This document shows, piece by piece, positions 165-50,182 of a DNA stretch of 64,000 nucleotides (position 1 is its first letter; each line of letters starts with the position of its first letter). The notes beneath the pieces were generated by a model, which searched no databases, was not told where the DNA came from, and worked only from the letters and a program-made list of their open reading frames with translations. Source of the stretch: Macrostomum lignano. Its lineage: Eukaryota. The DNA is taken from assembly GCA_002269645.1 (NCBI GenBank), contig NIVC01000169.1:496001-560000 (forward strand). The letters are read 5' to 3'. The translations under genes were made by a program, and so were the position numbers.

Positions 165-1040
165 TTCGGGAAGACAACTGAATTGGGGTAAAATTCGGGA
201 AGAGAACTGAGTAGGTGGTAAAGTTCGGGAAGAGAACTGAGTAGGTGGTAAATCCGGGAAGAGAACTGAGTAGGTGGTAAAGTTCGGGAAGAGAACTGAG
301 TAGGTGGTAAATCCGGGAAGAGAACTGAGTAGGTGGTAAAGTTCGGGAAGAGAACTGAGTAGGTGGTAAAGTTCGGGAAGAGAACTGAGTAGGTGGTAAA
401 GTTCGGGAAGAGAACTGAGTAGGTGGTAAACTTCGGGAAGAGAACTGAGTAGGTGGTAAATCCGGGAAGAGAACTGAGTAGGTGGTAAACTTCGGGAAGA
501 GAACTGAGTAGGTGGTAAACTTCGGGAAGAGAACTGAGTAGGTGGTAAATCCGGGAAGAGAACTGAGTAGGTGGTAAATCCGGGAAGAGAACTGAGTAGG
601 TGGTAAACTTCGGGAAGAGAACTGAGTAGGTGGTAAAGTTCGGGAAGAGAACTGAGTAGGTGGTAAAGTTCGGGAAGAGAACTGAGTAGGTGGTAAAGTT
701 CGGGAAGAGAACTGAGTAGGTGGTAAACTTCGGGAAGAGAACTGAGTAGGTGGTAAACTTCGGGAAGAGAACTGAGTAGGTGGTAAACTTCGGGAAGAGA
801 ACTGAGTAGGTGGTAAATCCGGGAAGAGAACTGAGTAGGTGGTAAATCCGGGAAGAGAACTGAGTAGGTGGTAAACTTCGGGAAGAGAACTGAGTAGGTG
901 GTAAACTACGGGAAGAGAACTGAGTAGGTGGTAAAGTTCGGGAAGAGAACTGAGTAGGTGGTAAAGTTCGGGAAGAGAACTGAGTAGGTGGTAAAGTTCG
1001 GGAAGAGAACTGAGTAGGTAGTAAAATTCGGGAAGAGCGG
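165..1040. repeat. 31-bp minisatellite (AAGTTCGGGAAGAGAACTGAGTAGGTGGTAA), GMPPA intron 3
   Basis: Direct tandem copies with 30/31-bp variants. Confidence 0.95.
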
Positions 1041-1152
1041 CAGAGAAGAGCTTGAGAATGTTACACAGTCGAGAATTACAACTACGCAGCATCTCGCTAT
1101 CCTGCAATATTGTCAACAGTGAAAAGAATCTATATATATACGGAAGCCTCAC

Positions 1153-3007
1153 CCAGCGGTTTTGACCTGACTCCAGAAGCGGGTCGTGACGTAAGCAAAT
1201 AGGCAGTTACGACTAGCCAATGGCTGGAATACCTCTTGTTCCATCTGAACGCACTCGTTGCACTGAGAGGACAGATCGAAGCTGCAAGGAATAGATTTAT
1301 AGATTATTAATGCATGCATAAGGCGCAGTTGTTAATATTTTGTAAAAACTCAAAACTTAGAACGTATGGAGCAGAGTTTCTCACGTGAAATGTGCATCTT
1401 TGTGCACTTTAACGGCCGATTTTAAGTATTGAAAAATGCTGGGGCTGAGTATGTACACGCCGCAATTGATCATTGTGCTGACAAATGTGGCCGGCTTCTC
1501 TACATAGTGCATTATCTGAATAGGAGTTTCATTGTTAGATATATGGTATATAGACACCTGACTTGAATTCAAATCAAGGTGAAAATGTTGATGAGGATCA
1601 GTGCTGTATTGTTGAGCTTTTCAAAAGTACCCAAGCCTATGGGTTTCTCCTTAATGGTTATTCTGACGGATCTACGGGATCTTATAAGAACGGGGTACAG
1701 AAGAGAGTAGGGGAGAGCGGTAGAGAAGAGAGCAGGGGAGAGCGGTAGAGAAGAGAGCAGGGGAGAGCGGTAGAGAAGAGAGCATGGGAGAGCGGTAGAG
1801 AAGAGAGCAGGGAAGAGCGGTAGAGAAGAGAGCAGAGGAGAGCGGTAGAGAAGAGAGCAGGGAAGAGCGGTAGAGAAGAGAGCAGAGGAGAGCGGTAGAA
1901 AAGAGAGCAGGGGAGAGCGGTAGAGAAGAGAGCAGGGGAGAGCGGTAGAAAAGAGAGCAGGGGAGAGCGGTAGAGAAGAGAGCATGGAGAGCGGTAGAGA
2001 AGAGAGCATGGGACAGCGGTAGAGAAGAGAGCAGGGGAGAGCGGTAGAGAAGAGAGCAGAGGAGAGCGGTAGAGAAGAGAGCAGGGGAGAGCGGTAGAGA
2101 AGAGAGCAGGGGAGAGCGGTAGAGAAGAGAGCAGGGGAGAGCGGTAGAGAAGAGAGCATGGGAGAGCGGTAGAGAAGAGAGCATGGAACAGCGGTAGAGA
2201 AGAGAGCAGGGGAGAGCGGTAGAGAAGAGAGCAGGGGAGAGCGGTAGAGAAGAGAGCAGGGGAGAGCGGTAGAGAAGAGAGCAGGGGACAGCGGTAGAGA
2301 AGAGAGCGGGGGAGAGCGGTAGAGAAGAGAGCAGGGGACAGCGGTAGAGAAGAGAGCAGGGGAGAGCGGTAGAGAAGGGAGAGGGAAATATCTGGCAAGA
2401 CGGGGGGATTAAAGTTCGGTGAGAGTGACAGAGAAGAGCTTAGAAATGCAAACTAAACCCCCTAACCAGTCACATGTACATGTAGGCTAAGCTTCACCTC
2501 GTCCGTGCCCTTCCGTATGACCGCGCAGCCGTACTGCACGCTCTGAGACCTAGTAGCCTCCGTGCACATCACAGTATAGGTCCCGGGCCTATGCTTAGCC
2601 AGCATATCGGCCAAAGAGAAATCGCAGCAGACGTCAGAGTTCATAACAAAGAAGGCGGCCGGATCGCCCAGCATAATCTGGTCCCGGAAATGATACAGAC
2701 CGCCCGCTGTGCCCAACGGCGTGAACTCCTGCAAATAGCGCATCCTGATGCCGAACTTGCGCTGGCATTCGTCAACAAACTGGCTTAGCTGATCTTTGGG
2801 ATAGTAGCCAATCAGGATGATCTCTCGCATGCCAGGCACGGCTGCGCACGCCTCAACGTGATGAAATATCAACGGATAGCCGCCGATGGACATCAATGGA
2901 ACCGGCTGGTCGAGTGACAGCGGACAAAATCTCGTTCCTTTGGCCGGGCCGCCTAGCAAGATAACGGCTTTGTAGGTTGCCTCGGGATTCGAGTCGCAGG
3001 CTGGCAT
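1153..3007 (-). CDS. GMPPA: Mannose-1-phosphate guanyltransferase alpha (regulatory GMPP subunit), 5' three exons; gene continues left of the window
   Basis: Exons 3007-2498, 1515-1385 and 1281-1153 with GT/AG boundaries and consistent phases (0,2,2). Motifs: KAVILLGGPAKGTRFCPLS (the GGP.KGTRF insertion typical of alpha, not beta), YLQEFTPLGTAGGLYHFRDQI, HYVEKPATFVSTMINCGVY, QMEQEVF...FWSQVKTAG. Confidence 0.92.
1697..2400. repeat. 25-bp purine-rich minisatellite (AGCGGTAGAGAAGAGAGCAGGGGAG), GMPPA intron 1
   Basis: Period 25 seen directly. Confidence 0.95.
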
Positions 3008-3159
3008 GCTTGCTGTGCTTTGGGCGCTGCAATAGCGATATTAATAGTAATAATAATAACACTGCATACATCCGTCTATTGTTTATGATAGAGGCACCGG
3101 GGAACAGAGGGGGGGGGCAGAAACAGAGGGACAGCTGTCCCCTGGTATTGACATTGTTG

Positions 3160-4975
3160 CGGCCTGTGGCTCTAAAATCTGGCATGTGGCGCTTAATTCT
3201 GGCCTGTGACGCTAAAATCTGGCCTGAGGCGCTAAAATCTGGCATGTTGGCGCTAAATTCTGGCCTGTGACGCTAAAATCTGGCCTGAGGCGCTAAAATC
3301 TGACATGTGGCGCTAAAATCTGGCATGTGGCGCTAAATTCTGGCCTGTGACGCTAAAATCTGGCCTGAGGCGCTAAAATCTGGCATGTGGCGCTAAAATC
3401 TGGTATGTGGCGCTAAAATCTGGCATGTGGCGCTAAATTCTGGCCTGTGGCGCTAAAATCTGGCCTGAGGCGCTAAAATGGCACTAAAATCTGGTCTGTG
3501 GCGCTAAAATCTGGCCTGGGGCGCTAAATTCTGGCCTGTGGCGCTTAAACCTGTCCTGAGGCGCTAAAATGGCGCTAAAATCTGGTCTGTGGCGCTAAAA
3601 TGGCACTAAAATCTGGTCTGTGGCGCAAAAATCTGGTCCCTGGCGCTAAAATGGCACTAAAATCTGGCCTGGGGCGCTAAATTCTGGCCTGTGGCGCTTA
3701 AATGGCGCTAAAATCTTGTCTGTGGCGCTAAAATTTGGTCTGTGGCGCTAAAATTTGGTCTGTGGCGCTAAAATTTGGTCTGTGGCGCTAAAATTTGGTC
3801 TGTGGCGCTAAAATGGCACTAAAATTTGGTCTGTGGCGCTAAAATCTGGCCTGGGGCGCTAAATTCTGGCTTGTGGCGCTTAAATCTGTCCTGAGGCGCT
3901 AAAATGGTGCTAAAATCTGGTCTGTGGCGCTAAAATCTGGTCTCTGGTGCTAAAATGGCACTAAAATCTGGTCTGTGGCGCTAAAATCTGGCCTGGGGCG
4001 CTAAATTCTGGCTTGTGGCGCTTAAATCTGTCCTGAGGCGCTAAAATGGTGCTAAAATCTGGTCTGTGGCGCTAAAATCTGGTCTCTGGTGCTAAAATGG
4101 CACTAAAATCTGGTCTGTGGCGCTAAAATCTGGCGCTAAAATCTAGTCTGTGGCGCTAAAATCTGGTCTGTGGCGCTAAAATCTGGCCTGGGGCGCTAAA
4201 TTCTGGCCTGTGGCGCTTAAATGGCGCTAAAATTTGGTCTGTGGCGCTAAAATGGCACTAAAATCTGGTCTGTGGCGCTAAAATCTGGTCTGTGGCGCTA
4301 AAATCAGGTCTGGGGCGCTAAAATGGCACTAAAATCTGGTCTGTGGCGCTAAAATTCTGGCCTGTGGCGCTTAAATGGCGCTAAAATCTTGTCTGTGGCG
4401 CTAAAATTTGGTCTGTGGCGCTAAAATGGCACTAAAATCTGGTCTGTGGCGCTAAAATCTGGTCTGTGGCGCTAAAATGGCGCTAAAATCTGGTCTGGGG
4501 CGCTAAAATCTGGCCTGGAGCGCTAAATTCTGGCCTGTGGCGCTTAAATGGCGCTAAAATCTTATCTGTGGCGCTAAAATTTGGTCTGTGGCGCTAAAAT
4601 TTGGTCTGTGGCGCTAAAATTTGGTCTGTGGCGCTAAAATCTGGCCTGGGGCGCTAAACTCTGGCCTGTTGCGCTTAAATGGCGCTAAAATCTTGTCTGT
4701 GGCGCTAAAATTTAGTCTGTGGCGCTAAAATCTGGTCTGTGGCGCTAAAATCTGGCCTGTGGCGCTTAAATGGCGCTAAAATCTTGTCTGTGGCGCTATA
4801 ATTTGGTCTGTGGCGCTAAAATCTGGTCTGTGGCGCTAAAATCAGGCCTGGGGCGCTAAATTGTGGCCTGTGGCGCTAAATTCTGGCCTGTGGTGCTTAA
4901 ATGGCACTAAAATATGTGTGGCGCTGTGTGGCGCTAAAATTTGGTGTGTGGCGCTAAATTCTGGCCTGTGACACT
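3160..4975. repeat. About 20-bp minisatellite (GGCGCTAAAATCTGGTCTGT) between DCTN6 and GMPPA
   Basis: 1.8 kb of tandem variants. Confidence 0.95.
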
Positions 4976-6120: not shown

Positions 6121-6723
6121 TTAAGACGGCCTATGCTGTTTAGCGGCGGCCGCTGCGGCAGAACTCGCGCCAGCCTTTTTAATATGATGAAAGTTGGGCA
6201 AAATCTTAGCCAAAAAGTCCAATTGCAGAGTCTGAGCTGGCGGCTTCTCGCTGACCACTTTCCGATGACTGGCGGCTCCGTAGACCACGCAGTTGTCTGG
6301 CAGGACCTCGCGGCCAGTGACGCTGCACATTGCGCCAATAGTACAGCCATTGCTAACAACAGTGTCACGTGATACAAAACTGCGCGCCTCGAGTACGTTG
6401 AAATCGCCAACTTTGACCGCCTCGCAACGGGAGCCAACCTCGAATATGTTCTGCGATCCAATTATCATCACCTTCTCGTTTGGATTGCTCTCGTCTGGCC
6501 TATTATGAATGACGGCAACCTCTTCAATTAAATTTCCATCGCCAATGATGATTGGCCCAGCCTCGGCTAGGATTCGCGCCTTCGGATGGATAACAGTTCG
6601 CTGGCCAATCGTGATGTCGCCTCGCAGTTCGCACTCGCTGCAGACGACAGCGCCTGGCGCTATTTTCACGCTAGTTCGAGACATTTCACTGATTTTAGGA
6701 TTGGCTGCGCTTAAATTTGACAT
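6121..6723 (-). CDS. DCTN6: Dynactin subunit 6 (p27), single exon, 200 aa
   Basis: Left-handed beta-helix hexapeptide repeats; [48 protein letters not shown] and C-terminal [20 protein letters not shown] match p27 family motifs. Confidence 0.95.
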
Positions 6724-12956: not shown

Positions 12957-15900
12957 ATGCGCCGCGGCCCCGGCCAGCAACCAACTTCTAGCGGCAGTGG
13001 GATCACGGTCAACCAGTCGCAGGGCTTCGACACGTCCGCCTTCAGCGTTCGCTCCGCGTCGCCAGCGGCCGCAGCGGTCGGAGCTCCGCAGCCGAGCGCC
13101 AGCGAGTCGTCACCGAAGCCGCAGCGCCGTCGGACCAGCGGCGACACCGCCGTTGGCATCGACGCGGGCAGCAGCGGCTCGACCGACTCGAACAGCCTCA
13201 GGCGCAGCCTGGAGCTCGACCGTCAGCAGCAATCGTCGGCCTTCCTGCCGCTGCCGAGCATGGAAGACCGGAGAGGCAAGTCCAGTTCTGGGCCCATTAA
13301 TACTCAGCAGCAGCAGCAGCAGCAGCCGCAGCAGCAGTCGCAAACTCCGCCACCAGGCGTCACCAGCCCGGTGCGTCGAACTCGCAGTCTGAAGGAGAAC
13401 CTCATGCAGCGGTTCAATTCGTCAATGGTCGGCGGCGGCGCCGCTGTCGGCATCGCCAGGGTCGCCGGGGTCACCTCGGTGTCGCCAGCGCCGTCGGAGG
13501 ATTCGCCGAAGTCGTTTCCACCGCCGTCTGGCGAGGAGGCGTTCAACTTCGATCTGCGTCATGCGGCGCTGACGCCAAGGACGCCGGCTGCTGCAGCTGC
13601 TGGCGGCTCTCGCTCGTCGAGTCCCAAGAAGGCGGCTCAGGAGGCGGCCAGCAAGCAGCAGCCGGTGCAGATGAGCCGCAACAGAGCCGGCAGTCTCCGC
13701 GGCGGCTCCGTAGTGAAGGTGCTGCCCGACAAGAAGCTGCTCGACAAGGCCAGCAGCAGCGAGAATCTCACCAATCAGAATGCGGCGGCAGCCGATTTGA
13801 ACAGCCTGGCCTCGCTGGTGCAGAAGAAACGCGACCGGTCTCAGGAGAGCCTCGAGCAGGCTAAGACGGGCGGCAGCGGAGGCATCAGCGGCAGTCGGAA
13901 GCCGCCGACTCCGACGCCAGCTGTCGACTCGGACGATGGCTCCGAGGTGGCAGCGGCGAAGAGCAAGCCGCCCAGCGGGATGGCTCGCGGTGCCAACAGC
14001 AGGCGGCTGGAGAGCCCGACTAGCAGCGGTCGGGGTGCCGCCGTTGTGGCCGCGGCGCTCTTGCCGGCGGCTACGGACGACTCGCCGGCTGAGGCGAACG
14101 ACACGGACAGGGAGTCGCCAGGCGAGGATCAGCAGTCGGACGGTGAGGTGGCTGCTCAAGCCGCCGGCAGCCACAATCATTCCAGCAGCTTGGAGTTTCT
14201 AATGCAGGTGGGAACTGCGAGATTAAGATTTTTTAAGCTTCCGCGCTAACCAATGCTGTGAAGAGTTGTTTTTACTGTATAAGGAAAATAGGAGGGCTGC
14301 TGTCAAAACTCAGTGTTTCCAGGCTTCCATTTATATAAATTTCATCTGCTACCCGAAACCTTCCTGAATCCTTGATCTGCTACCCGAAACCTTCCTGAAT
14401 CCTTGATCTGCTACCCGAAACTTTCCTGAATCCTTGATCTGCTACCCGAAACCTTCCTGAATCCTTGATCTGCTACCCGAAACCTTCCTGAATCCTTGAT
14501 CTGCTACCCGAAACCTTCCAGAATCCTTGATCCGCCATCCGAAACCCTCCTGAATCCTTGATCTGCTACCCGAAATCTTCCTGAATCCTTGATTCGCTAT
14601 CCGAAACCTTCCTGAATCCTTGATCTGCTACCCGAAACCTTCCAGAAACCGTGATCTGCTACCCGAAACCTTCCTGAATCCTTAATCTGCTATCCGAAAC
14701 CTTTCTGAATCCTTGATCTGCTACCTGAAACCTTCCTGAATCCTTGATCTGCTACCCGAAACCTTCCAGAATCCTTGATCCGCCATCCGAAACCCTCCTG
14801 ACTCCTTGATCTGCTATCCGAAACCTTCCTGAATCTTTGATCTGCTACCCGAAACATTCCTGAATCCTTGATCTGCTACCTGAAACCTTCCTGAATCCTT
14901 GATCTGCTACCCGAAACCTTCCTGAATCCTTGATCTGCTACCTGAAACCTTCCTGAATCCTTGATCTGCTACCCGAAACCTTCCTGAATCCTTGATCTGC
15001 TACCCGAAACCTTCCTGAATCCTTGATCCGCTATCCGAAACCTTTCTGAATCCTTGATCTGCTACCCGAAACCTTCCTGAATCCTTGATCTGCTACCCGA
15101 AACCTTCCAGAAACCGTGATCTGCTACCCGAAACCTTTCTGAATCCTTGATCTGCTACCCGAAACCTTCCTGAATCCTTGATCTGCTATCCGAAACCTTC
15201 CAGAATCCTTGATCCGCTATCCGAAACCTTTCTGAATCCTTGATCCGCTATCCGAAACCTTCCTGAATCCTTGATCCGCTATCCGAAACCTTTCTGAATC
15301 CTTGATCTGCTATCCGAAACCTTCCAGAATCCTTGATCCGCTATGCGAAACCTTCCAGAATCCTTGATTTGATATCCGAAACCTTCCAGAATCCTTGATC
15401 CGCTCCCCCTAACCTCCCAAAACCCTAGATAAGCTACTGAAAACTCAACCCGATCATTGATCCTCAACCTCGAGTTTCCTTTGATGAATTCACAAAGTAA
15501 CGTTCCTTCTGACCCCACGACCTTCAGGACGCCCAGTCTCGAACGGCGCCCCAGATCCGTCATCCCAGCGCTAGAAAAATCGAGTACACCTCGTCAGCGG
15601 CTGCGGCTGCGGCAGCCGCCAGACGCGAGGGCAGTCCGTCGAAAATTCTCGGTGCCGGAGGTAGCAGCCCGCCAAAGGCGGTGTCCTTCAATCCAAACGA
15701 CGAGATCAAGACCTACGAGGGCGATTACCACAGTCGCTACAAGAAGCACCACCGCAGCGGCTCGTCCTCTCATTCGCAGAGGCAGCAGCAACATCATCAG
15801 CGGCAGCATCGAGCCGTAGCGGCAGCAACAGCGGTGGCGGCGATGACTGCGGCGACTTCTGATGGCGGCGGCGACAGAAACGGACACGGAGAAGCTTGGG

Positions 15901-22200: not shown

Positions 22201-25200
22201 ACTAGCGTTAATAAGTTGATTGATTAAGTTTACGAGAGCCGTTTATTGTCGATAGATTTGAGAAAGGCCTCCTTGTTTCCTAGGATATATTCCTAGAGGA
22301 TCTATTCATTGATTTGAGTTATCCCTTACGTTTCGGACGTAACGAAGAAGACGCCCTTCAGGAGGACCTTACAGACCTCGGAGAATTCAATTGTCCATTT
22401 GGGCGCACGTTCCATTGTTAATTCCCAGCTCGAGTACACCGTCAAGACTTCTGATTCGCTCTCGTTTTTGGTCGACCCACAGATAAAGTCAAGGGCTCCC
22501 GGAGACAGCAATTCACCGAAGCCTGTCGTCACTACAGCACAGCGAGACCAGCTAGCTCACCTACACCCGTCACTACAGCACAGCGAGACCAGCTAGCTCA
22601 CCTACACCCGTCACTACAGCACAGCGAGACCAGCTAGCTCACCTACACCCGTCACTACAGCACAGCGAGACCAGCTAGCTCACCTACACCCGTCACTACA
22701 GCACAGCGAGACCAGCTAGCTCACCTACACCTTTCAAGACCAAGACGTTTGCAAGTTACACGAGGAGCCGCTCCAGTAAGATTTTTTACTTTTCATATAC
22801 GTAGGCACTTGTTCCCCAGTGTCTAGAAGTGGGAGTTTTCGAGTGACTGACCACCACTCTTAAACTTTTCAGTTTCAACGGCGAGGGGTACGGCTGTTGA
22901 ACACTGAGACTGTCAATGGAGCATACTGCTGGACCCCCCAATATTTACCTAGTTACCCATACTTAAAATCTTGACCAAACTGGACTCACAACGTGTACCT
23001 AAGACACTCAATTTAGACCTACGTAAGACACCCAATTTAGACCTACGTAAGACACCCAATCTAGATTTACCTAAGACATCCAATGCGGACCTACCTAGAC
23101 CCCTTGGTGCCATCTGGTCGAGTGACTGGCAGCAGGATGACCTCAAACGATCGATATTTGTTCAGCTCATCGGAGATCGCGTTCACCTCCGTTACCATCG
23201 GAATGAGCTCCAAGATTTGCTCCTGCACAACTGCTTGCTCTGAAATTATTCGTTTTTACGTAAACTTCAATAAATTTAGTGCTATATGTACGTCAGAATA
23301 CTACTATCAGTAGTAAATAAATCGCTTGCCTTTAGTCAGACCGGCAGATCCGGTGGCAAAACCCTTGACATTGGCAATTTCCTTCTGCACAAATTCCCAG
23401 TTGATGCGCTTCGGTAAACCGGCGTTGCATGACCGGTTCTTCGGGTTGATGAATACGTACACGTGATTTGATCCTGGCATTGGCGAATGGGTCCAGGTGT
23501 TAGTGGAATTTGTTACTTTTTCTGTTTTTCTACCGGAATCAATTTGTTTTGAATATTCGAAAATTGTATTCGATTATCTATCTCACTCTGATTGGATAGA
23601 GTCAAGCTAATCTCTGATTGGCTAGAATCAAGATTCTCTCTGATTGGCTAGGATCCAGCTAGTCTCTGATTGGCTAAAAACATGCTCCTCCATGATTGGC
23701 TCGAATCAAGCTACACTCTGACTGGCTGGAATCAAGCTACTATCTAATTGGCTATATAATAAAGCTACTCTTTGATTCGCTAGAATCAAGCTAAAATCTG
23801 ATTGGCTAGAATCAAGATACTCCCTGATTGACTTTGATCTAGCTAATCTATGATAATCTATGATAATCTATAATCTAAGCTATACTATGCCATACTAATC
23901 GCTACCAGGATTTAAATTAATAAATTTTGTCCCTTTCTTATCGGCCGCCCCGAAGGGGGGCACTAGATTGCTAGTGATTGCCTAAAAACATGCTTCTCCC
24001 TGATAGGCTAGAAACATGCTCCTCTCTGATTGGCTAGTTCAGCTAGATTCAGCTAGTCTCTGACTGGCTAGGACCAAAACCTAAGAAAGATTTACTCACC
24101 GAACACAATCCGATCCTTGTGAGTGAGCTCCATCGGGCCAGTCAACGGCAGGCCATTCACAAGAGTCTTGGCACCCTGGATTGCCGGTCGAATTTCAAAT
24201 TCCGTGTCAGTTAGTCGGGCAATCACGGCATGTCGCTTTGAGATTGACAGGCCCATCAGGCGAATCTGCGGCTGCAATTCCTCCTCCGATCGGCCAATCA
24301 AAATCTCGGCCGACTCCAGAAAATGAACCACCACCCCTGACAGCATTGGATCCTCGTTCAGGTTCAGCAGGTGCGGAATTTGCGACTTTTTGTCTGCCGC
24401 TTCGCTGACCGGGGCGAGATCGGCTCGAGCTTCGGCGAGCTTTGAAGTTTTTGTTTGTTAGAGTTGGCACGGAATCGAATTCGGATTTCTGAACTGAGAC
24501 AGGGAATCTTCTCATTGGTTGAGACAGGGAATCTTCTGATTGGCTAAGACAGGAACAACTCTCATTGGCTGAGACAGTGGATCCTTCTGATTGGTTGAGA
24601 CCACAGATACTAAAATAACTAGATGGGCCACTCAGGCATATATACACTCGTACTTATTAAAACAGATTTCTATTTTTAGTTCTGTAGCAAAGAAGAATAT
24701 ATAGACTATTTTATAAAGATACAGGCAGCTAAAATGACTTTGGTAAGTTTAGAAGCCGAAGCTTGCAGGCGCAAATAACTTGCTAATTGGTCAGTAATAA
24801 TGTACGTTAGACAGTCCACTGAAATGTACATGGCAGCTTTAGGCTGGAATTCTGAGAAAGGCAATAAAAATTGGGGCTGGGCCGGGGTAGTGTGGAAAGG
24901 CGCAGTTGGAGGGTTCAAGCTGGGGGGGTAATAGCACAGACCAATAAGTATAACTAGACTGCGCATCCAGCATTGCTTGCGTGGGCTCGTTTTTTGACAA
25001 AATGACAAAGCAAAAAATGGTCCTCTCTACCCCAGCCCAAAACGATCGATATTTTTGGCTTGGGGAAGACTGGCCCTTCTTCAGCTGTCTGCACTGCCCT
25101 TTTTTAAATTAACATGTATATTAATGCGGCTTGGGGACCACAATAGCAATGCTATACTAACCTAAAACAGCTAAGCAAAGTTATTAAAAAATTAATAATT

Positions 25201-28200
25201 TCTCAAAACGAAATGGAAGAACAACCTGAATCTTCTAAATTGCCGAGGAAAAGAAAAGGAAATTACGGCAGCTTTTGCTGCGCTGCTGGCTGCTCGAACA
25301 ACTCAGCAATGTCTTTGGCGGGAGTGTCCTTTCATACTTTTCCAAAGGACAAGGAAATAAGGAAAAAGTGGCTGATAGCGCTGAGAAGAAAAGATTTTGA
25401 GCCATCGCCATCCACGCAAGTCTGCTCAATGCATTTTGAGGAATCTTGCTTCAAAGAGCAATTTGCAGGCTTTCTGCCTAGCGTCAAAAGACGGCTTTAT
25501 CCAAATGCCGTTCCTTCCATCTTCCCGGCGTTCCCTGACCATCTGCAGCCGAAAGCTGAGAAGAAACGGAAGACTGCCACCGCGGCCGCAGCTGGCGAAG
25601 TTGATTTCGCTGCATTTTGTAAATCAACAGAGAGCAGCGAGCCGGAAGCTCCAGTGGCTGCCAAGGAAGATGAAGATCCTGGACCGGACATCCATGTTAA
25701 CTGCGTGCCCAGAGAAGAATTCGACAAGAAGGTGAGAGCACTTAAAAATCTTCGGCGCAGATACAGAAGGCTTCTATCTACTCATAGCCGGTTCAAGAAA
25801 AGTGCAAAGGCTGTTGAAATCTTAAGGCGGTCGCTCCAGAGCAAGTACCGCAAAATTCGATCACTGCGCTCAAAGCATAGGCAAATTAAACAAAGAGCCA
25901 AGACCCTGAAAGATGTGATTCGAGAGTTAAGGGCCAAATGTAGTTTGAATGAAGCTGCTGCATCTCGGCTGAATTTCTTGACCTCCGATTCACTGCTTAG
26001 CAGCATTTTGCCAAGCAAGATTACCAAGAGGACAAGAATATTCTCCCACGAAGTGCGGAAATTCGCCTCCACATTGCACTTTTACAGCCCGAAGGCCTAT
26101 GCGTATGTGAGACAGTACTTTCAGCTTCCGCATCCAGCTTCGCTTAGAAGATGGCTCTCGAATGCGAAATGCCTTCCAGGATTTTGTGACCAAGCCTTTC
26201 AGAACTTTCTCGGCGACGCAGCTCCAATGATGACCGATCCTTCGACTACTGCAACGTTGTAGCTGATGAAATGTCACTGGAAGCGATGGTTGAGTGGAAT
26301 TCAAATGAAGGCAGTTTCTTTGGCTATGTTGACAAAGGCGATGGCAAGTCAACTGATCAGGAGGCAACTTCAGCATTGGTAGTGATGGCAGTGGGTCTCA
26401 AGAGCTATTGGAAGCTACCTTTAGGATATTTTCTAGTGAGCGGAGTTGATGGCGAATTTCTTTCAAGTGTCGTAGAGGAATCAATCCAGCGGCTCTACCA
26501 GGTTGGCGTTATTGCCTCATCATTTACATGCGATGGGACTCAGCACAATATTCGAGCGATCGAGCTTCTTGGTGCCAGAATAAGCTCTCCCAATGAGATA
26601 GTTTCCTCTTTCCCACACCCCTGCGATCCCGGCATTCAGGTTTCAGCCTTCTTGGATGTGCCGCACATGTTGAAGCTGATTCGAAACCAGTGGCAGTCCC
26701 TGGGAACATTTGTTTGGCCGGACAGAGGAAATATTGATTGGAAATATGTGTGCATGTTGCAGCAAGTACAGGAGAGCCATGGACTCAGACTGGGCAATAA
26801 GCTGAGCAGGAATCACATTAACTTTGCTAATTTAAAGATGAAAGTTTATTTGGCCTCACAACTTTTTAGTAAGTCGGTGGCTGACTCATTACGATGGGTG
26901 CACAAGCAAGGCTTGGCCGGATTTGATCATTCCGATGTATTAGTGACAGCAGATTTTATTGAGCACATCAATGATCTGTTCGATGCGTTCAACTCGAAGC
27001 GACTGGTAAATTATGGGGCTAAAATGGCTCTAAGAGCTGACAACCAGTCTGACTGGATCGACTTCTTCACTGACTCGATCCAGCTTCTCAAGAGCTTAGA
27101 AACTCCAGCTAGATGCAAAATCGTTGACACTGCAAAGAAGACAGGATTTTTAGGCTTCATCACCAATTGCCATGCCGTTATTGCGCTTGCCAAGTATTTA
27201 TTTTCAACTGGCGAATTCTTCTTTCTTTGCACTTACAAGCTGTCTCAGGACTTTCTAGAACTATTCTTTAATGCAGTCAGGCTTCGAAATGGCTGGAACC
27301 ACAACCCGACACCAAAGCAGTTTCGCTCGGCATTTAGGCAGCTGCTGGTGCATGCCGGAGGTGGGATTCTCCAGTCTGTCAGCCCGAATGTGAAGCAGCA
27401 GGATGCCACCATTCAACTGTCCTTGTCATGCCTACCATCATCAGCTGAATCAGCACAGAAGCAGTGGAAGATGAAAGTTCAGAATGATATGGGACTGAGT
27501 CTTGAATCCATCCAGCACTGCATGAATGCATCTAATTGTGAGATTTGCCAGTCTATTGTGTACTATATTGCCGGAGCAGTTGTGCGAAGCATGTTGAAAG
27601 TTGTCGAATGTGCTACGTGCAGGTCAGCTCTGACTGCCAGCTCCGAGACGCCACCAGCTTTTCGTGCCCCTTGCTCACTTGTTGCCTTGAAGAATGTTTT
27701 GAACAAGGAAGGAACTGGCGGCTTGATTTTTCCCAGCAGCGATGTCTTCCGTGTGCTGCTCAGTGCTGAGTCTGTTATTCGACGTGCCAGCTATAACAGC
27801 CAATTCTCCAGTGACGTAGCAGTTCACGAGACTTTGCGCATGTCGAGCAATCTGTTCCCTGAGCTTGACTCGCATTCGGCATCCGCAAGCAGCGGCATTG
27901 AGTCGCACAAGCTCCATTTAATTCGAGTCATGGCCGGGCTCTTCATAAAGATCAGAATGAAAAAACTAGCTAAAGAACTTTCTCGCGCAGGAAGAAGACC
28001 AGGAAGGAGGCAGAGACTACTTCGAGCAGCGATATTTCTTAATCTATAGTATATTCGAAACCAGGTGAGCTATTTATTTACTTTTATTACTGCTTCTAGC
28101 TCGTATGCTATCAGCAACAACAAAAAGGTCTCATTTTGTCTGCAAGCGTTTTGTACGGTTTTTTAGTTTTTAATAAATCGAAAAATAATACTGGATTTAA

Positions 28201-31200
28201 ACTGTTAAATTGCTAGTTGCACATAAAGTTGGTTAAATGGTTAGCAATCCGTGTTCCATGGCAAAAGGCAACAATTAATACAGCGGGCCCAATGACAGAG
28301 GGGTAGGAAGGGAAAGGAAGCCAAAAATATCGATCGTGAGGGGGTGGGAGCTGGAGTGCCATTTTTCCTACTTGGAAAGAGGCACACATTTCTTGCCCCA
28401 CACGCGCAGTCTAGTTATACTTATTGGTCTGTGGGTAATAGTCAATAAATGAGCCTTGGCTTTAAAAATCAAAATGCTTCTGTTTAACTTACTACTGAAC
28501 TGAAAGTAGCTTGCACGCAAATGTGCTGAGTGAGTGACCCATCTAGTTATTCTGTGGTTGAGACAGGGAACTTTCTGATTGGTTGAGACAGGATTCCTCT
28601 GATTGACTGAGACAGGAATTTCTCACATTAGCTGAGACAGGGAATCTTTCTGATTTTCTGAAGCAATATTTTCTTTCATGAGAAAATCAGTGCCTGACCA
28701 ACCTTGGCCTCCCAATTGTCAGAGCTGCTCTGCTGCATTAGCTCACTGTTGGACATCAGCTGGGCCCGAATTTCCTCTTCAAGTTCTTTGCGCATTTTTT
28801 CCACGTCTGAAAGAAAGAGTTGAGAGTAAATTAAAAACAAAGGCCTGGCATGCAGCCGCAAAGGGTACTCATGAAATTGAGCATAGACCTTCTTTGGACA
28901 TGCCGGTCTGCTGCTGTTGCTGCGGGAATCCTGCGCTACTCAGATCTCCAGAATCCAGCACCTTCTTTAAACGTTCGTTCTCCATCTGGTTTTTGGAGTT
29001 GGCAGAATGTTTTCTTTTTAGTAAATTGAATATTCTCTTACATAGTAGCTTAGAGTGACCGTGCCGGACAGACTTCAAGTCACACTATATAAATAGCACT
29101 GAGTGACCCCAAAGTTTCAGCCTCTCTACAAACCTAACACTAATCCTCTCTCTCAACCCTCTATCTCCACCCCCTCTCTCTCTTTCTCTCTTTCAAACTT
29201 TCTCTCTCAATCTCCTTTCTCTCAACCCTCTAATGTAACTCCCAACCCTCTATGGGTATTTTGTTGTACTTTTTATTTGCAACTCAGTTTGTCATAAATT
29301 ACCATAGACTAATTTCCTTTTACAGTTCTTTCTCGCAGTTAAGTTTCTCGCCCCAAGCCTTCTCGTCCTTAACTCATAAAATATATTGCAATTCAAATCT
29401 AAGTTAAGTTGTAGTTTCACTACAAATTGGTCCGGTGAGGCGGCGAAAGATATTACTCGCATACTCAACACTCACAGAAGACAAATCCAATGACGGACAG
29501 TGCAAGCAACAATTCCGCTCCGACACCACCTACAACCACGCAAGCCGCACCAAGTTCGGCCGCACCAGTGGTTACACATGCAGTAGGAAACGCCGCCGAC
29601 ACCGCTTCAGTCTCCCTGGCCCACCTGAAGCTGCCAATCTTCTATCGCAACAACCCGGAAGCATGGTTCCTCACGCTGGAGGCCCAGTTTATGCTCAACA
29701 GGGTGACCAACGAGACCGCCAAATTTTACCACCTAGTCTCTCATCTACCGGAGGATATCGCGGCTCTGCACTTGTCCGCTCAGACTCCAAAACAGTACGA
29801 ACAACTGAAAACAGCGATTACATCGACTCTGCAAAAGTCCAAGCAGCAGAAGGTTTCGGAAGTATTGCAAGTCTCGGACCTCGGAGGAGACAAGCCATCA
29901 ATCTTCATGCGCAAACTCCGGAGCAAGATGGAGCAGTGCCAGATACAGCCCGACGAGGAACTCCTCAAGGCCACTCTGATGCGCTGTCTTCCACAGGACC
30001 TTCGTATCGCACTGTCGGGATTCCAACAGCAGTCATCCCAGCAAATTTCCGAGATTGCTGACTCGATGTTGGTCGTCAGAGGCCTTAGCTCTCCATCGCC
30101 AGCGACAGTTTGCCCAATTCAGCAGGCCGGTGCAGATCGGACACCCCAACAGCGCTTTGAGCAAGCTCCACACCGACAAGCATCTTCTGGTAACCGGCGA
30201 GACCCTATTTTTTCTCAACCCTCTTTCCCAACCCTCTCTCTCAACCCTCTCTCTCTCAATTCTCACCTGCAGTTCGCGCAGCAGCTTATCCATGGGATTC
30301 TCATTCACTACGGCTTGATTTTTAATTTTCTTTGCCCGATCAGCGTAGCGCAGAGTGCTCAGCGTCTCGTCGTAGTTGATGTCGGCCGGGGACAGGGCGG
30401 CGATCATCACCGTTTTGCTGGAGTTGAAATTGCTCAATCGAGTTTTTCAAGCTCTTTGGATGCTACTGGCAGTAGGAGAAGTGGCTTATCTATACTGAGA
30501 AGTTGCTGGGTCAAAAAGGCTATTAAATACTGACACCCAATTAAAAACATGAATATTCGCAGGAGGGTTGCGGTGCACGTACGGCGACATTGTCCCACAG
30601 CCAGCGCTGACGGCAATTCTGCCTTTTCCACTGACTCCTGAGCACATGCGATCGCGCCAATACTGTACGCAGGCACAGCACTCATGCACACGCTCACACA
30701 GGGTGTACATCGGCCCTGACTGTCTAATCGTCAGGCATGTACACTGTGCCTTGGGGGTTTAGCGATCATGGGTGTGAATCGCACAACAACCCCGGTGGCT
30801 AATTTTCGCGTGCACACAAGCCCCAGCAAATGAATGCGGCCGCGAATCGAACCAAGGGTTTACCGCTGCCCGGCGCTGCCCTACACCGACACCTCCACGA
30901 GTTCAAACACAAATTAGCCACCCGATTCGGCACTCAATAGCACCAAACATGAGCGCCACAGAATTACATTCTTACATCCTCAGTATTACATCCTGACAAT
31001 ATTACATCCTTATAAAACTGGATCCCATCCAAATTTACCTGTTGCCGCCAAGAGCATTCTGCAGCAGCTTAGTTAGAACGGAGTCCCTATAGGGCACCAT
31101 CACTTTCTTCTTGCCAGTGGACAGGTCAGCCAGAGCGGAGATCACGTTGCCCAGTGCTGACAGGGACTTGTTGATGTTGGCGCCTTCTTTGAGTCTGTCG

Positions 31201-34200: not shown

Positions 34201-37200
34201 AAGTTTCTGTTGTCATGACAACAGGGTTGAGAAAAACTGCATGGCAATTGTGAGAGTCTGCGGAGAGAGAGAAGAGAGAAAAAAGCAGATATGCAATATT
34301 CTCCCAATATACGAGCTAGTTCCCTCCCTCCCCAACCCAACCAGATGCACTCCCGAATCCCTGAAACCAGCTGTTTGAATAAGCGCGGAGCAGATGTGAA
34401 AATTCCTTTTATAAACAGAAAACCTGCCTCCCGCCTCTATCCCCGTTTTTTGTTCACGTCAAAATGGCATAACTGCAATGGCAGCAGTTTGCGACTCAAT
34501 TTGATGCCGGATTTGAGAATTCTTCCGTTGCCATGACAACGGATTTCTTGCTCAGCTACGCGCGCAGGCATGCATACAAAAATGAGGAAAATGTTGAACT
34601 AAAGCAAACATGCATAAATTTGTATGAATTAAATCAGACGGAATTTTCAGCCAATAACCCGGGATCATTATAATATAACTGTTTTAGCTGTCACCTGTGC
34701 GGAATTGCTGGAATTCTCCGCGATCGTCTTGAATAGCTCGTCGCACGTGATTGGCACAATACCTCTGGAGTGTTGGCGTTTGGGAAGGGGGAGTGAAGGT
34801 GCAATTAGTGTTTCATGATATTTATGGCGTTTTTGTGACCGCACTGTGCAGATCACACAGTAGTATCTACCCATATTAGCTCAGAATTTCACTCTATTAG
34901 ATGCAATGTATCAGCTTAACCTAAAATCTATTAGCTACCCTCTATTAGCTACCCTCTATTGGCTACCCTCTATTAGCTACCCTCTATTAGCTACCCTCTA
35001 TTAGCTACCCTCTATTAGCTACCCTCTATTAGCTACCCTCTATTAGCTACCCTCTATTAGCTACCCTCTATTAGCTACCCTCTATTAGCTACCCTCTATT
35101 AGCTACCCTCTATTAGCTACCCTCTAATAGCTACCCTCCATTAGCTACCCTCTATTAGCTACCCTCTATTGGCTACCCTCTATTAGATGCAATGTATTAG
35201 CTAAACCTAAAATCTATTAGCTACCCTCTATTAGCTACCCTCTATTGGCTACCCTCTATTAGATGCAATGTATTAGCTAAACCTAAAATCTATTAGCTAC
35301 CCTCTATTAGCTACCCTCTATTAGCTACCCTCTATTAGCTACCCTCTATTAGCTACCCTCTATTAGCTACCCTCTATTAGCTACCCTCTATTAGCTACCC
35401 TCTATTAGCTACCCTCTATTAGCTACCCTCTATTAGCTACCCTCTATTAGCTACCCTCTATTAGCTACCCTCTATTAGCTACCCTCTATTAGCTACCCTC
35501 TATTAGCTACCCTCTATTAGCTACCCTCTATTAGCTACCCTCTATTAGCTACCCTCTATTAGCTACCCTCTATTAGATGCAATGTATTAGCTAAACCTAA
35601 AATCTATTAGCTACCCTCTATTAGCTACCCTCTATTGGCTACCCTCTATTAGATGCAATGTATTAGCTAAACCTAAAATCTATTAGCTACCCTCTATTAG
35701 CTACCCTCTATTAGCTACCCTCTATTAGCTACCCTCTATTAGCTACCCTCTATTAGCTACCCTCTATTAGCTACCCTCTATTAGCTACCCTCTATTAGCT
35801 ACCCTCTATTAGCTACCCTCTATTAGCTACCCTCTATTAGCTACCCTCTATTAGCTACCCTCTATTAGCTACCCTCTATTAGCTACCCTCTAATAGCTAC
35901 CCTCCATTAGCTACCCTCTATTAGCTACCCTCCATTAGCTACCCTCTAATAGCTTACCCTAAAATCTATTAGCTATTCTCCATTAGCCAACCTATTAGAC
36001 ACCCCCATTAGACACCCCCATTAGCCAACCCCATATTCACATAGCAACATGAATAAACCTGTTGCTGCCGTAGCCAACCATCGAATACGATTTTCCCGCG
36101 CCAGTCTGTCCGTAGGCGAACAGGGAGCAATTGTAGCCAAGGAAGGCGTTGTTAAGGACGCCCTGGCCTAGGTCGCCAAACACTCGCTTCTGGCTGGCGT
36201 AGTTCGAGCTGGCCGACTGCGGCTCGAGCACTCCGTCCGGCCTCTCTTCGAATCCGTCATGCGACCTAAAAAAAGTACAGGTTGTCAGGACAATTACTGC
36301 AGAATATCAGCCGTGAAGACTTCGATTTAGCGCACTAACCAGTAGGAATAGTCGAATGCGAACGTCTTGACGTCTGAAGGATCTGAAATATTTGGGATTC
36401 GTTTTGTTATAATTTTTTTATTTTGGTACTTTATTAAACTGCTGCCACTTACATATAGCTATTTCTAGCGAAACTGCATGACTGATATATGTCTGACATA
36501 AAAAGTGAAACGTCAGGAATGAAAGCGAGATGTCAGGAATAGAAGTACAATGTCAGGGCAGAAATCGAAATGTCAGGGAACGAAGTGAGATGTCAGGGAA
36601 GGAATCGAGATGTCAGGGAAGGAATCGAGATGTCAGGGAAGGAATCGAGGTGTCAGTGAAGGAAGTGAGATGTCAGGGCAGGAATAGAGATGTCAGGGAA
36701 CGAAGTGAGATGTCAGGGAACGAAATTAGATGTCAGGGAAGAAATTGAGATATCAGTGAAGGAAGTGAGATGTCAGGGAGAGAAGTGAGACGTCAGGGAA
36801 GAAAAAAAAGATGTCAGAAAGGAAGTGAGATGTCAGGGAAGAAAGAAAGATGTCAGAAAGGAAGTGAGATGTCAGGGAAGGAATCGAGATGTCAGAAAGA
36901 AAGTGAGATGTCAGGGAAGATAGAGAGATGTCAGAAAGGAAGTGAGATGTCAGGGAAGAAAGAGAGATGTCAGAAAGGAAGTGAGATGTCAGGGAAGGAA
37001 TCGAGATGTCAGAAAGGAAGTGAGATGTCAGGGAAGGAATCGAGATGTCAGAAAGGAAGTGAGATGTCAGGGAAGGAATCGAGATGTCAGAAAGGAATCG
37101 AGATGTCAGGGAAGGAATCGAGATGTCAGGGAAGGAAGTGAGATGTCAGGGAACGAAGTGAGATGTCAGGGAACGAAGTGAGATGTCAGGGAAGGAAGTG

Positions 37201-41467: not shown

Positions 41468-42695
41468 GGGTGAGGGAGCGGAAATCCCCAGTGAGGGAGC
41501 GGAGATCCTCAGTGAAGGAGCGGAGATCCTCAGTGCGGGAGCGGAGATCCTCAGTGAAGGAGCGGAGATCCTCAGTGAAGGAGCGGAGATCCTCAGTGAA
41601 GGAGCGGAAATCCCCAGTGAGGGAGCGGAGATCCTCAGTGAAGGAGCGGAGATCCTCAGTGCGGGAGCGGAGATCCTCAGTGAAGGAGCGGAGATCCTCA
41701 ATGAAATGGCGGAGATCCTCAATGAAATGGCGGAGATCCTCAGTGAAGGAGCGGAGATTCTCAGTGAAGGAGCGGAGATCCTCAATGAAATGGCGGAGAT
41801 CCTCAGTGCGGGAGCGGAGATCCTCAGTGCGGAAGCGGAGATCCTCAGTGCGGGAGCGGAGATCCTCAGTGAAGGAGCGGAGATTCTCAGTGAAGGAGCG
41901 GAGATCCTCAATGAAATGGCGGAGATCCTCAGTGCGGGAGCGGAGATTCTCAGTGAGGGAGCGGAGATCCTCAATGAAATGGCGGAGATCCTCAGTGAAG
42001 GAGCGGAGATTCTCAGTGAAGGAGCGGAGATCCTCAATGAAATGGCGGAGATCCTCAGTGCGGGAGCGGAGATCCTCAGTGCGGGAGCGGAGATCCTCAA
42101 TGAAATGGCGGAGATCCTCAGTGCGGGAGCGGAGATCCTCAGTGCGGGAGCGGAGATCCTCAGTGAAGGAGCGGAGATTCTCAGTGAAGGAGCGGAGATC
42201 CTCAGTGCGGGAGCGGAGATCCTCAGTGAAGGAGCGGAGATTCTCAGTGAGGGAGCGGAGATCCTCAGTGAAGGAGCGGAGATCCTCAGTGAGGGAGCGG
42301 AGATCCTCAGTGAAGGAGCGGAGATCCTCAGTGAAGGAGCGGAGATCCTCAGTGAGGGAGCGGAGATCCTCAGTGAAGGAGCGGAGATCCTCAGTGAGGG
42401 AGCGGAGATCCTCAGTGAGGGAGCGGAGATCCTCAGTGAAGGAGCGGAGATCCTCAGTGAGGGAGCGGAGATCCTCAGTGAAGGAGCGGAGATCCTCAGT
42501 GAGGGAGCGGAGATCCTCAGTGAGGGAGCGGAGATCCTCAGTGAAGAAGCGGAGATCCTCAGTGAAGGAGCGGAGATCCTCAGTGAGGGAGCGGAGATCC
42601 TCAGTGAGGGAGCGGAGATCCTCAGTGAAGAAGCGGAGATCCTCAATGAAATGGCGGAGATCCTCAGTGAAGGAGCGGAGATTCTCAGTGAAGGA
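41468..42695. repeat. 21-bp array (GAGCGGAGATCCTCAGTGAAG)
   Basis: About 58 tandem variants. Confidence 0.95.
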
Positions 42696-43204
42696 GTAGA
42701 GACAGCAGAAAAGTTGGGCAATTCCAGTGAAGGAACATTCCAACGCCACAATAGCATGAATTATTAATGACCCGTCCAGACTTCAGACTCGAAACGAAAG
42801 CTCGAGTTTTAGTTTAAAAAACTGACCGAACGGATTCAGACAACAAGCAAGACACAATAATACTCGAAATTATAACAAAACTAACACGGCAAGAAGTTTC
42901 TATGCGGGCAGTTGGGGGGGGGGGGGGGTCGCGACATGCTCAACTGTCTGAGTTTTCTGCACGTCGCATCGACGCCAGTCTGCAGCGGCTAAATTTCGAG
43001 TTTCTGGGGTTGGGCAGCATGGAACTGTCTGGCTCGAGACAGCGCTTGCTCGGCAGGGAGTACTAGATATGAAGTGGCATCTGGAGCTGGAGTATCAAGG
43101 GGCGCTCAAAGATGGCGCGCAACATTCATAACACAGCTCCTCATATCGCTTCACTCATTACCGCACCAACTTCACAACACAAAAATTTCACAAGACATAA
43201 CCTT

Positions 43205-48130: not shown

Positions 48131-50182
48131 TCAATCGGTCAGCGGCACGGCCAGCTCCTTGCGCTGGACCAGCTGCAGCAGGCTCTGATAATTAACGCTA
48201 GACTCCGTGTCGACGCCGCTATCAAACTCGTGCAGTACCTGCTGCAGCAGTTGAATGTACTCAATTGTGATTCGAAGTGTTTTCACCTTTGACAGACGCT
48301 TGTTGCGCTTCTCGTACGGGATGTACCTGCGGGGCAAGGGTTGGCGCAGTCTGTATATAAAGTTTTAAAAGGACGTCTTGAACTATATAGTTTATACGAG
48401 GTAATGTGTTTTTCTAGTCAATATTAATCGGAGCCATACAATATTGATAAGATTTTAAATTTATATTCATACTTATTCATCATTTAAAATAATTATAGGG
48501 AGAGAAAGAAATCTAGGTGGGTATCGGTTAATTCTGATTTTTACAACTTTATTCTATGGGGTATTCTCATTTCTCAAGGCGATTTTTGTAAGGGTATTCT
48601 TAGGGGTATTTTGGGGGTATTTATTCTTTGGGTATTTTTGATGGTATTCTAGTGGTATATTGGGGGTATTCTCGGGCGATTTTCAGGCGCATTCTTAGCG
48701 GAAATATTTAGCAAAGAGAGGGGTATTATGGGGACAATAAGGGATAGATAATATCGTAACTGTTATGGCTTCAGATCCAACAGAACAGCAAACAGAACAG
48801 CAAACAGAACAGAAAACAGAACAGCAAACAGAACAGAAAAAAACAGCAAACAGAACAGAAAAAAACAGAACAACAAACAGAACAGCAAACAGAACAACAA
48901 ACAGAACAGCAAACAGAACAGCAAACAGAACAGCAAACAGAACAGCAAACAGAACAACAAACAGAACAGCAAACAGAACAGCAAACAGAACAGCAAACAG
49001 AACAATAAACAGAACAGCAAACAGAACAGCAAACAGAACAACAAACAGAGCAGCAAACAGAACAGAAAACAGAACAGCAAACAGAACAGAAAAAAACAGA
49101 ACAACAAACAGAACAGCAAACAGAACAACAAACAGAACAGCAAACAGAACAGCAAACAGAACAGCAAACAGAACAGCAAACAGAACAGAAAAAAACAGAA
49201 CAACAAACAGAACAGCAAACAGAACAACAAACAGAACAGCAAACAGAACAGCAAACAGAACAGCAAACAGAACAACAAACAGAACAGCAAACAGAACAGC
49301 AAACAGAACAGCAAACAGAACAGCAAACAGAACAGCAAACAGAACAGCAAACAGAACAGCAAACAGAACAGCAAACAGAACAGAAAACAGAACAGCAAAC
49401 AGAACAGCAAACAGAACAGCAAACAGAACAGCTGAAAAGAAAACTCACTTCCTCAGCCTGGCAAACGCCGAGTTCACCGCTTCAACTCTGCGCCGCTCCC
49501 TGGCGTTCCTCTTCGCCACCATCAACGGCGTCTTCACTTTCGTCTCGCCGCCGCCGCCGCCGCTACCAGACCCTGGCGTCGCAGCCTCGCCGCCGCAAGG
49601 CGCGGAGGCCGACTTTGTCAGCTTTCGATTATTCCTGCCCGAGCAGCCGCCTGTAGCCGGGACGGTGGCCGAGGAGGCGGCGCAGGGGTATAAAGGAGGC
49701 GAAGCCCCGGTCAGCAGCGAGGAGGAGACACTTGACGTCGAGTCTGTCGGGAGCCGCGGCTGCTGCTGCTGGACCTCGTCGTCGTCCTCGGCTGTCCCGG
49801 CGGCCAGCAAGAAGCCACCACCGGAGCAGTCGGAGGCCTCGGCAGGGGAGGCCAGATAGGCCACTGGGCTGGACGAGTAGCCAGCTGAGCAGGTTGGCAA
49901 ACTGTTTGCGAAGATCGGCGGCTGCTGCTGCTGCTGGTACTGGAGCTGCTGGTACAGCTGGTGCTGTTCATCAAAGTCAGCCAACTGGTGCTGATACTGC
50001 TGGGGATGCTGCGGCAGCAGAAGCTCACCCTGATGATGAGGCACCTGACAGGTTGGCTGATTGATGTAGATAAAATCAGAGCCGGGCAGAGGCTGAGGCT
50101 GGCTATGCCAGTGCGGATAAACTCCGCTGTCACCGCAGCCGCTCAGATACAAAATTCCACATTTGCTGTCAACATCCGCCAT
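48131..50182 (-). CDS. Achaete-scute family bHLH transcription factor, 2 exons, 309 aa
   Basis: Exons 50182-49449 (AA|GTGAGT) and 48326-48131 join to give VAKRNARERRRVEAVNSAFARLRKYIPYEKRNKRLSKVKTLRITIEYIQLLQQVL. N-terminus is Q/S/G-rich. Exact paralogue not assignable. Confidence 0.9.
48775..49432. repeat. 12-bp array (AACAGCAAACAG) in the bHLH intron
   Basis: Tandem copies. Confidence 0.95.

Follow-up and report, generated by a model that had tools for sequence, protein, structure and literature searches.

We analysed a 64,000-nucleotide stretch of the Macrostomum lignano contig NIVC01000169.1 (assembly GCA_002269645.1, positions 496,001 to 560,000; hereafter the window), in which two transposable elements, one lying inside the other, fill most of an intron of a kinesin gene. 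The gene is a kinesin-3 (KIF28-like) on the minus strand. Its motor-domain exons (37459-30270) encode a sequence 75-76% identical to the best named proteins (Lymnaea, Lottia, Bugula), with other matches reaching 82% at partial coverage. The intron (24440-28702, 4,263 bp) has a GT donor at 28702-28701 and an AG acceptor ending at 24440; it is bounded upstream by the exon for the neck coiled coil (28703-28807, minus strand) and downstream by the exon that starts the FHA region (24077-24439, minus strand). A first-pass annotation, made from the sequence alone, had placed the elements in kinesin intron 10, where they split a minisatellite. The host intron and the interrupted minisatellite were both recovered, but the rank of the intron can be put only roughly at 8th-10th. 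Transposon sequence plus one copy of its target-site duplication (TSD) accounts for 3,963 bp, or ~93% of the intron, and the original intron was ~300 bp long and mostly minisatellite.

The inner element spans 24935-28433 (3,499 bp) and is a P-type DNA transposon carrying a transposase gene in the orientation opposite to that of the kinesin gene. At its ends stand perfect terminal inverted repeats (TIRs) of 30 bp (CACAGACCAATAAGTATAACTAGACTGCGC), which a repeat finder located at 24935-24964 on the plus strand and at 28404-28433 on the minus strand; the two arms are 100% complementary over all 30 nt. With up to three mismatches allowed, this 30-mer has only these two sites in the window, and none of 100 shuffled sequences matched (0/100). 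Directly outside the TIRs lie the two copies of an 8-bp TSD, GGTAATAG, at 24927-24934 and 28434-28441; the target lay inside the outer element. These copies are the sole occurrences of the 8-mer in the 64 kb. Subterminal inverted repeats follow ~70-130 bp from each end: a 49-nt segment at 25013-25061 (plus strand) is 78% complementary to 28318-28366 (minus strand, from the repeat finder), and its 31-nt core reaches 87%. An AATAAA at 28172-28177 (plus strand), ~120 nt past the transposase stop codon, may serve as a polyadenylation signal.

Two long open reading frames (ORFs) lie on the plus strand of the inner element in different frames, 25213-26262 (349 aa) and 26271-28049 (592 aa). The 349-aa ORF holds a THAP domain and a P-type helix-turn-helix (HTH), and the 592-aa ORF holds a truncated RNase H N-terminal domain (RNase H-N), a GTP-binding insertion domain (GBD), and an RNase H C-terminal domain (RNase H-C). 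Joined by correction of one frame change, they give a transposase of 945 aa. Part 1 of its coding sequence (25213-26199, plus strand) covers the THAP zinc finger, a coiled-coil linker, the P-type HTH, and the start of RNase H-N; as sequenced, this frame stays open up to a stop codon whose last base is 26262. Part 2 (26202-28049, plus strand) comprises the rest of RNase H-N, the GTP-binding insertion, RNase H-C, and a C-terminal region. It carries D352, D441, D482-x2-H485, and E683 and ends in the stop codon 28047-28049.

The frame-corrected protein matched five Pfam families: THAP (PF05485, E=1.6e-19), the Tnp_P_element HTH (PF12017, 6.7e-22), TNP-like RNaseH_N (PF21787, 3.2e-38, complete over positions 1-137 of 137), GBD (PF21788, 5.3e-34), and RNaseH_C (PF21789, 1.7e-15). 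A phmmer comparison with the Drosophila P transposase structure (PDB 6P5A) aligned residues 217-714 at E=2.4e-40, with ADEMS, CDG, DVPH, and QDFLELFF standing opposite FDEM, SDLG, DTPH, and QDIVEHFF. In this alignment, D352, D441, and E683 fall on the Drosophila triad D230/D303/E531, and D482-x2-H485 falls on the D(2)H signature (Drosophila D339). A DDE triad and a [C/D](2)H signature have been described for the P superfamily (PMC8230255). The THAP domain also matched the solved structures of THAP1, THAP2, and THAP11, and its zinc-finger ligands C22, C27, C71, and H74 occupy invariant columns in an alignment of relatives. Furthermore, the corrected protein is colinear with five intact relatives from the first methionine to the terminal IF-NL; those of 904-933 aa are 41-45% identical end to end, and P0005 (920 aa) is 35% identical. 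Exact look-ups of both half-proteins in protein collections returned no match.

The inner element thus combines the THAP and HTH domains, the split RNase H with GBD, the DDE/D(2)H residues, TIRs, subterminal repeats, and an 8-bp TSD, all of which characterize the P superfamily. Judged by this domain architecture, the homology to 6P5A, the TSD, the TIRs, and the subterminal repeats, it is a THAP9-like member of that superfamily. This agrees with the first-pass annotation in its superfamily assignment, for which the Pfam architecture and the PDB match now provide support alongside the 8-bp TSD, the 30-bp TIRs, and the subterminal inverted repeats, and in its description of the inner element as having perfect 30-bp TIRs and an 8-bp TSD, which was upheld by the full complementarity of the arms, by GGTAATAG on both sides, and by the shuffled controls.

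The transposase frame is broken at a single point. At 26200-26202 (plus strand), F329 (TTT) and E331 (GAA) are separated by 2 nt (CA), whereas a full codon for E or Q occupies this place in intact relatives. The intact relative L001/P0001 (933 aa, 45% identical in the alignment) reads PGFCIPAFEELSRRRKS across the lesion; the window reads PGFCDQAF in one frame and ELSRRRSS in the next, with CA (26200-26201) in place of a codon. This indicates a 1-nt deletion, which would fit a change of CAAGAA or CAGGAA to CAGAA. No other lesion was found in the transposase coding sequence (2,838 nt). An intron that bypasses the lesion was ruled out, because conserved residues directly flank the 2-nt gap and leave no room for one (AF|CA|ELSRRR vs AFEELSRRR in relatives), and a programmed frameshift was ruled out as well, as no X XXY YYZ slippery site is present.

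The deletion falls inside RNase H-N, and the protein is cut after the HTH domain. As sequenced, the copy is therefore predicted to encode two partial proteins, one with THAP and HTH and the other a headless catalytic part. Pieces of 349 aa and 592 aa take the place of the uninterrupted transposase frame that autonomy demands, and by its sequence the copy is non-autonomous unless the deletion is an assembly error. Its transposase ORF being split, it would depend for any movement on transposase provided in trans. The first-pass annotation had labelled the inner element as autonomous-type; it had missed the 1-nt deletion at 26200-26202, and the label does not hold for this copy. It had also proposed recent activity. 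The insertion does look young, as all 30 TIR pairs and all 8 TSD pairs agree and the 2.8 kb of coding sequence contain one indel and no stop codon, but the copy itself is frameshifted.

The closest proteins (P0001-P0005; loci L001, L002, and L006) came from marine metagenomes and Logan assemblies and are 35-45% identical over their full length. Like the inner element, these relatives have a single intron-less ORF, and with contigs of 3.3-3.8 kb they are of similar size. Their termini begin with CACAGAAC(A)ATA... and include GTAGA, which makes the inner TIR a typical one for its clade. In contrast to the inner copy, the relatives have intact ORFs, and they come from different organisms. At L002, an ENA metagenome scaffold, the element at 63-3494 has 36-bp perfect TIRs and an intact ORF but no TSD in the form of matching 8-bp flanks, and a second CACAGA-type terminus lies 19 bp past its right TIR (3495-3513). 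This extra terminus could reflect another case of nesting, two elements side by side, the footprint of an excision, or an artefact of the assembly, and we did not use it as evidence. A Macrostomum lignano protein, P0054 (UniRef A0A1I8H379), contains a C-terminal THAP segment (748-899) that matches the N-terminus of the inner transposase at 66% identity, low-complexity linker included. Its gene model fuses a different P-like transposase to that segment, and the model may mark a closely related family directly beside another P-like element in Macrostomum lignano.

The outer element extends over 24602-28556 (3,955 bp with its insert). Without the insert it measures 448 bp at 39.5% G+C, divided into a left segment of 333 bp (24602-24934) that has no coding remnant and a right segment of 115 bp (28442-28556). 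Its left TIR (24602-24634, plus strand) is CACAGATACTAAAATAACTAGATGGGCCACTCA, that is, CACAGA[TACTAAA]ATAACTAGATGGGCCACTCA, and its right TIR (28531-28556, minus strand) reads CACAGAATAACTAGATGGGTCACTCA inward from 28556. The two share a 21-nt core at 95% identity, with one mismatch, and differ by a 7-nt indel, TACTAAA being missing on the right. The longest open frame in the outer element is 82 aa from stop to stop and has no transposase match. The 8-mer GTTGAGAC flanks the element at 24594-24601 and at 28557-28564.

This 8-mer is also part of the 25-nt unit (~CTGAGACAGGGAATCTTCTCATTGG) of the surrounding minisatellite, whose halves were delimited by Tandem Repeats Finder and phase analysis at 24494-24601 and 28555-28655. 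The first-pass annotation had itself raised the possibility that the match is due merely to the repeat unit, and the repeat phase speaks to it. When the element was removed and one copy of the 8-mer kept, the unit spacings were 25, 25, 25, 26, 25, 24, and 25; keeping both copies produced a 34-nt unit, and keeping neither a 43-nt unit. The period of the minisatellite is restored with one copy, and the outer 8-mer is therefore a true insertion duplication; its origin as a by-product of the minisatellite was ruled out.

Short, non-coding, and bounded by TIRs (imperfect ones) and a TSD, the 448-bp element resembles a miniature inverted-repeat transposable element (MITE). By its structure it is MITE-like, although a MITE in the strict sense is a family of many uniform copies and one copy is known here. 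The MITE label of the first-pass annotation is thus apt for its size, lack of coding sequence, and boundaries, and less so in view of an interior not related to the inner element and of the 7 nt missing from the right TIR. Its imperfect TIRs and the TSD GTTGAGAC were recovered at the same coordinates by the repeat finder, a blind scan, and the phase test.

For the blind scan, we searched the whole window for CACAGA...TCTGTG pairs whose flanking 8-mers match at 7/8 positions or better (>=7/8). Only 2 of 11 candidate pairs passed, namely the inner and outer elements, and the same two were the sole matches when the terminus was relaxed to CACA (8,700 pairs). No further copy of either element was found in the window by TIR search with up to three mismatches, by blastn of three pieces, or by the blind scan. 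Exact scans with both TIRs of metagenome and viral collections returned 0 matches, as did a scan of a prokaryote-genome collection with the inner TIR; these collections do not hold eukaryote genomes, and the results carry little weight.

The two elements are related at their ends. Both TIR sets begin with CACAGA and have the 9-mer ATAACTAGA in common. In an end-anchored alignment, the outer-left and inner TIRs scored 13, a score reached by 0/400 random 30-mers, even when these were forced to start with CACAGA. About 19/24 terminal positions agree, which is significant but does not amount to the near-identity seen in the BuT5 pair discussed below. Between the interiors no similarity was detected in any orientation, and the outer element was thereby ruled out as a deletion derivative of the inner one. 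The kinship is confined to the termini, and the outer element therefore represents a sister family. The related CACAGA termini and the nesting in a relative had both been proposed from the initial inspection, and both are confirmed, the first by ATAACTAGA and the alignment score, the second by a host element that is short, non-coding, TIR/TSD-bounded, and related at its termini.

Together, these data make it highly probable that the locus arose by two successive cut-and-paste integrations catalysed by P-superfamily (THAP9-like) transposases, that is, as an ordinary nested insertion; the two separate 8-bp duplications imply two integration events. In the simplest order, the short element came before the long one. 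The 448-bp P-ended element would first have entered the 25-nt minisatellite in the 300-bp kinesin-3 intron, duplicating GTTGAGAC; the 3,499-bp P-like element would then have entered it 115 bp from its right end, antisense to kinesin, duplicating GGTAATAG. By analogy with the Drosophila P element, the THAP zinc finger would bind the subterminal sites and the coiled-coil region would oligomerise the transposase. The RNase H-like DDE domain, split by the GTP-binding insertion, would cut the TIR ends and join them to target DNA 8 bp apart, and repair of the 8-bp stagger would leave the 8-bp duplication. The frameshifted copy would be mobile only through transposase acting in trans.

Several points weigh against this reading. 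The order of events is not readable from the sequence, and a composite assembled at another locus could have arrived by way of its outer ends. Of the left outer TIR, 7 nt have no counterpart in the right one, which makes the present transposition competence of the outer element uncertain. Mobility and family structure rest on one locus, with no second copy of either element. Finally, the frameshift shortens a 2-nt run (AA or GG) by one base and could be an assembly error, in which case the copy would be intact. The composite deserves closer consideration. If the inner element had first inserted into the short element at a different locus and the 3,955-bp block had then moved by its outer ends, the outcome would be the same structure, with both TSD pairs intact. 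P-family transposases tolerate divergent ends, and Drosophila P and zebrafish THAP9 excise each other's elements (bioRxiv 10.1101/2024.03.22.586318). This is an experimental precedent for cross-mobilisation between divergent P-family ends, by analogy with which trans-mobilisation is plausible here through either pair of ends, the two routes that the first-pass annotation had proposed for the composite. Movement as a unit nevertheless seems unlikely to us, with 7 nt missing from one of the ends it would have used and no second composite copy in hand. Short elements are normally far more numerous and mobile than 4-kb composites. A slightly less likely alternative is targeted insertion ('homing'), the target preference raised in the first-pass annotation, under which resident relatives attract the inner transposase, for instance through sites in the short element that its THAP domain binds. 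The sole inner copy in 64 kb does sit within the sole related element, but this is a single case, and it was chosen because it is nested. About 40 bp from the insertion point, the outer element also contains a sequence (24877-24895, TGGGCCGGGGTAGTGTGGA) that weakly resembles the subterminal repeat core of the inner element, agreeing at 16/19 positions with the reverse complement of the left core (25031-25049). A match of this quality was reached by 15/300 shuffles in one of four comparisons, and it is not significant. Both local hopping and double insertions at a single site are familiar from P elements (PMC7776569; PMC5932611), although the Drosophila double insertions have been attributed to strong target sites and not to recognition of a resident element (PMC5932611). 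The locus does not require homing, and nesting is an ordinary result of transposons landing in transposons. We would give still less credence to the broader proposal that the transposase of this family prefers resident sister-family elements, possibly by way of THAP binding to subterminal-like sites, and so builds composites with two usable sets of ends while sparing host genes.

Two further alternatives concern the gene carried by the inner element. The more serious one holds that the frameshift is a sequencing or assembly error and that the copy is intact, autonomous, and possibly active. This is a realistic possibility, if clearly the less probable one: the lesion is the sole one in 2,838 nt, the loss of one base from a 2-nt run suffices to explain it, and the TIRs and TSDs are perfect. 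On the other hand, the deletion is present in the sequence as given, two-base runs are not a typical error hotspot, and the exact look-ups of both half-proteins in protein collections found nothing. The other alternative is that the gene is a domesticated, THAP9-like host gene and that no transposon is involved. Domestication has occurred repeatedly among THAP9-like genes (PMC7776569; PMC3698922), yet here perfect 30-bp TIRs and an 8-bp TSD bound the gene, which lies antisense within an intron of another gene and inside another transposon, and the frame of the gene is interrupted. These TIRs and the TSD already refute a domesticated THAP9 gene, and we attach practically no probability to it. 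Two successive integrations, with a copy broken by one deletion, remain our preferred account of the locus.

Among known systems, the Drosophila melanogaster P element (2.9 kb; 6P5A) has the same arrangement of THAP, coiled coil, HTH, and an RNase H domain split by a GTP-binding domain as the inner element. The DDE and D(2)H residues and the 8-bp TSD occur in both, and the TIRs are of similar length (30 bp in the inner element and 31 bp in the P element). The inner termini start with CACAGA, whereas the P element terminus is CATGATG. The two are distant in sequence (E=2e-40 over the core), and the coding region of the inner element is intron-less where the P element has four ORFs joined by splicing. 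They also differ in host, a spiralian as opposed to an insect, and the inner copy is frameshifted. The 11-bp inverted repeats that lie ~100 bp inside the ends of the P element (PMC7776569) are paralleled by the inner subterminal repeats.

Zebrafish Pdre2/zfTHAP9 is likewise a non-insect P-like transposon with TIRs, subterminal repeats, and 8-bp TSDs (PMC7776569; bioRxiv 10.1101/2024.03.22.586318), and as in the present case it co-exists with shorter non-autonomous relatives. Unlike the inner element, Pdre2 has 13-bp TIRs and 12-bp subterminal repeats ~400 bp from its ends, and its activity has been shown experimentally, whereas the inner element is known from sequence alone. Sharing that is limited to the termini, with unrelated interiors and 8-9-bp TSDs, has been described for the BuT5 MITE and its P partner in the Drosophila repleta group and for P-related MITEs of Anopheles gambiae (PMC3698922), and the outer and inner elements follow the same pattern. 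BuT5 and its partner have nearly identical ends and many copies, however, in contrast to the ~19/24 agreeing terminal positions and the single copy known here. Double or nested P insertions in Drosophila also arise from successive integrations at one place, each with its own 8-bp duplication (PMC5932611; PMC7776569). Those tandem P dimers involve the same 8-bp hotspot and the same family, while here one element lies within the body of a member of a different, related family. With nearest relatives ~35-45% identical, the inner element is new, yet P-like transposons, short non-autonomous partners, and nested insertions are already well described.

The surroundings of the locus are rich in tandem repeats. 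Apart from the interrupted minisatellite (24494-24601/28555-28655), arrays at 23586-23830 and 23975-24037 belong to a set with 26- and 25-nt units and a common core, CTGATTGG(C/T)T, which holds an inverted CCAAT motif. The shared core of these neighbouring intronic minisatellites suggests a possible common origin or constraint. Across the window we counted ~45 separate minisatellite arrays, distilled from 60 repeat-finder rows of which many overlap, with periods of 10-61 nt and often 20-70 copies, in addition to two 4-nt microsatellites. The arrays fill most introns and intergenic stretches (e.g., 158-1037, 14344-15415, 34927-35960, 41470-42696, and 62137-64000). This tandem-repeat density is unusually high and produces many spurious long ORFs.

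In a neighbouring kinesin intron, a 347-aa ORF (29490-30533, plus strand) encodes DUF7041 (Pfam E=4.8e-17), a gag-like, transposon-associated domain, and its 3' part runs antisense over the kinesin exon 30270-30422; the ORF is probably a fragment of another mobile element. Elsewhere in the window, dynactin subunit 6 is encoded on the minus strand at 6121-6723 by an apparently single-exon gene. Its best identity is 64% to a named protein (Lineus) and 68% to metagenome proteins. As nothing in the protein collection comes closer to this dynactin-6 than 68% identity, sampling around the host lineage is poor. An exon at 2462-3007 (minus strand) resembles GDP-mannose pyrophosphorylase, as judged by eye, and one at 49445-50182 (minus strand) encodes a bHLH transcription-factor segment with the motif KRNARERRRV.

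For annotation, the locus means that ~93% of a kinesin intron is transposon and that two THAP9-like ORFs are the halves of one broken transposase and not host genes. No new mechanism has to be invoked for the nesting, which is nothing out of the ordinary for transposons. What the locus does provide, in a spiralian, is a P-type transposon that looks young, is nearly intact, and has classic ends; elements of this kind are little characterised in that group, and the closest protein that we found is 45% identical. A P-type family that may have been active recently is thereby indicated for an animal lineage that has received little study. The first-pass annotation had called it a candidate native transposon system, which would take an intact copy elsewhere in the genome. 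Should such sister copies exist, the family could be put to use for gene transfer in its own host and would offer a further comparison for the mechanism of P and THAP9 transposases.

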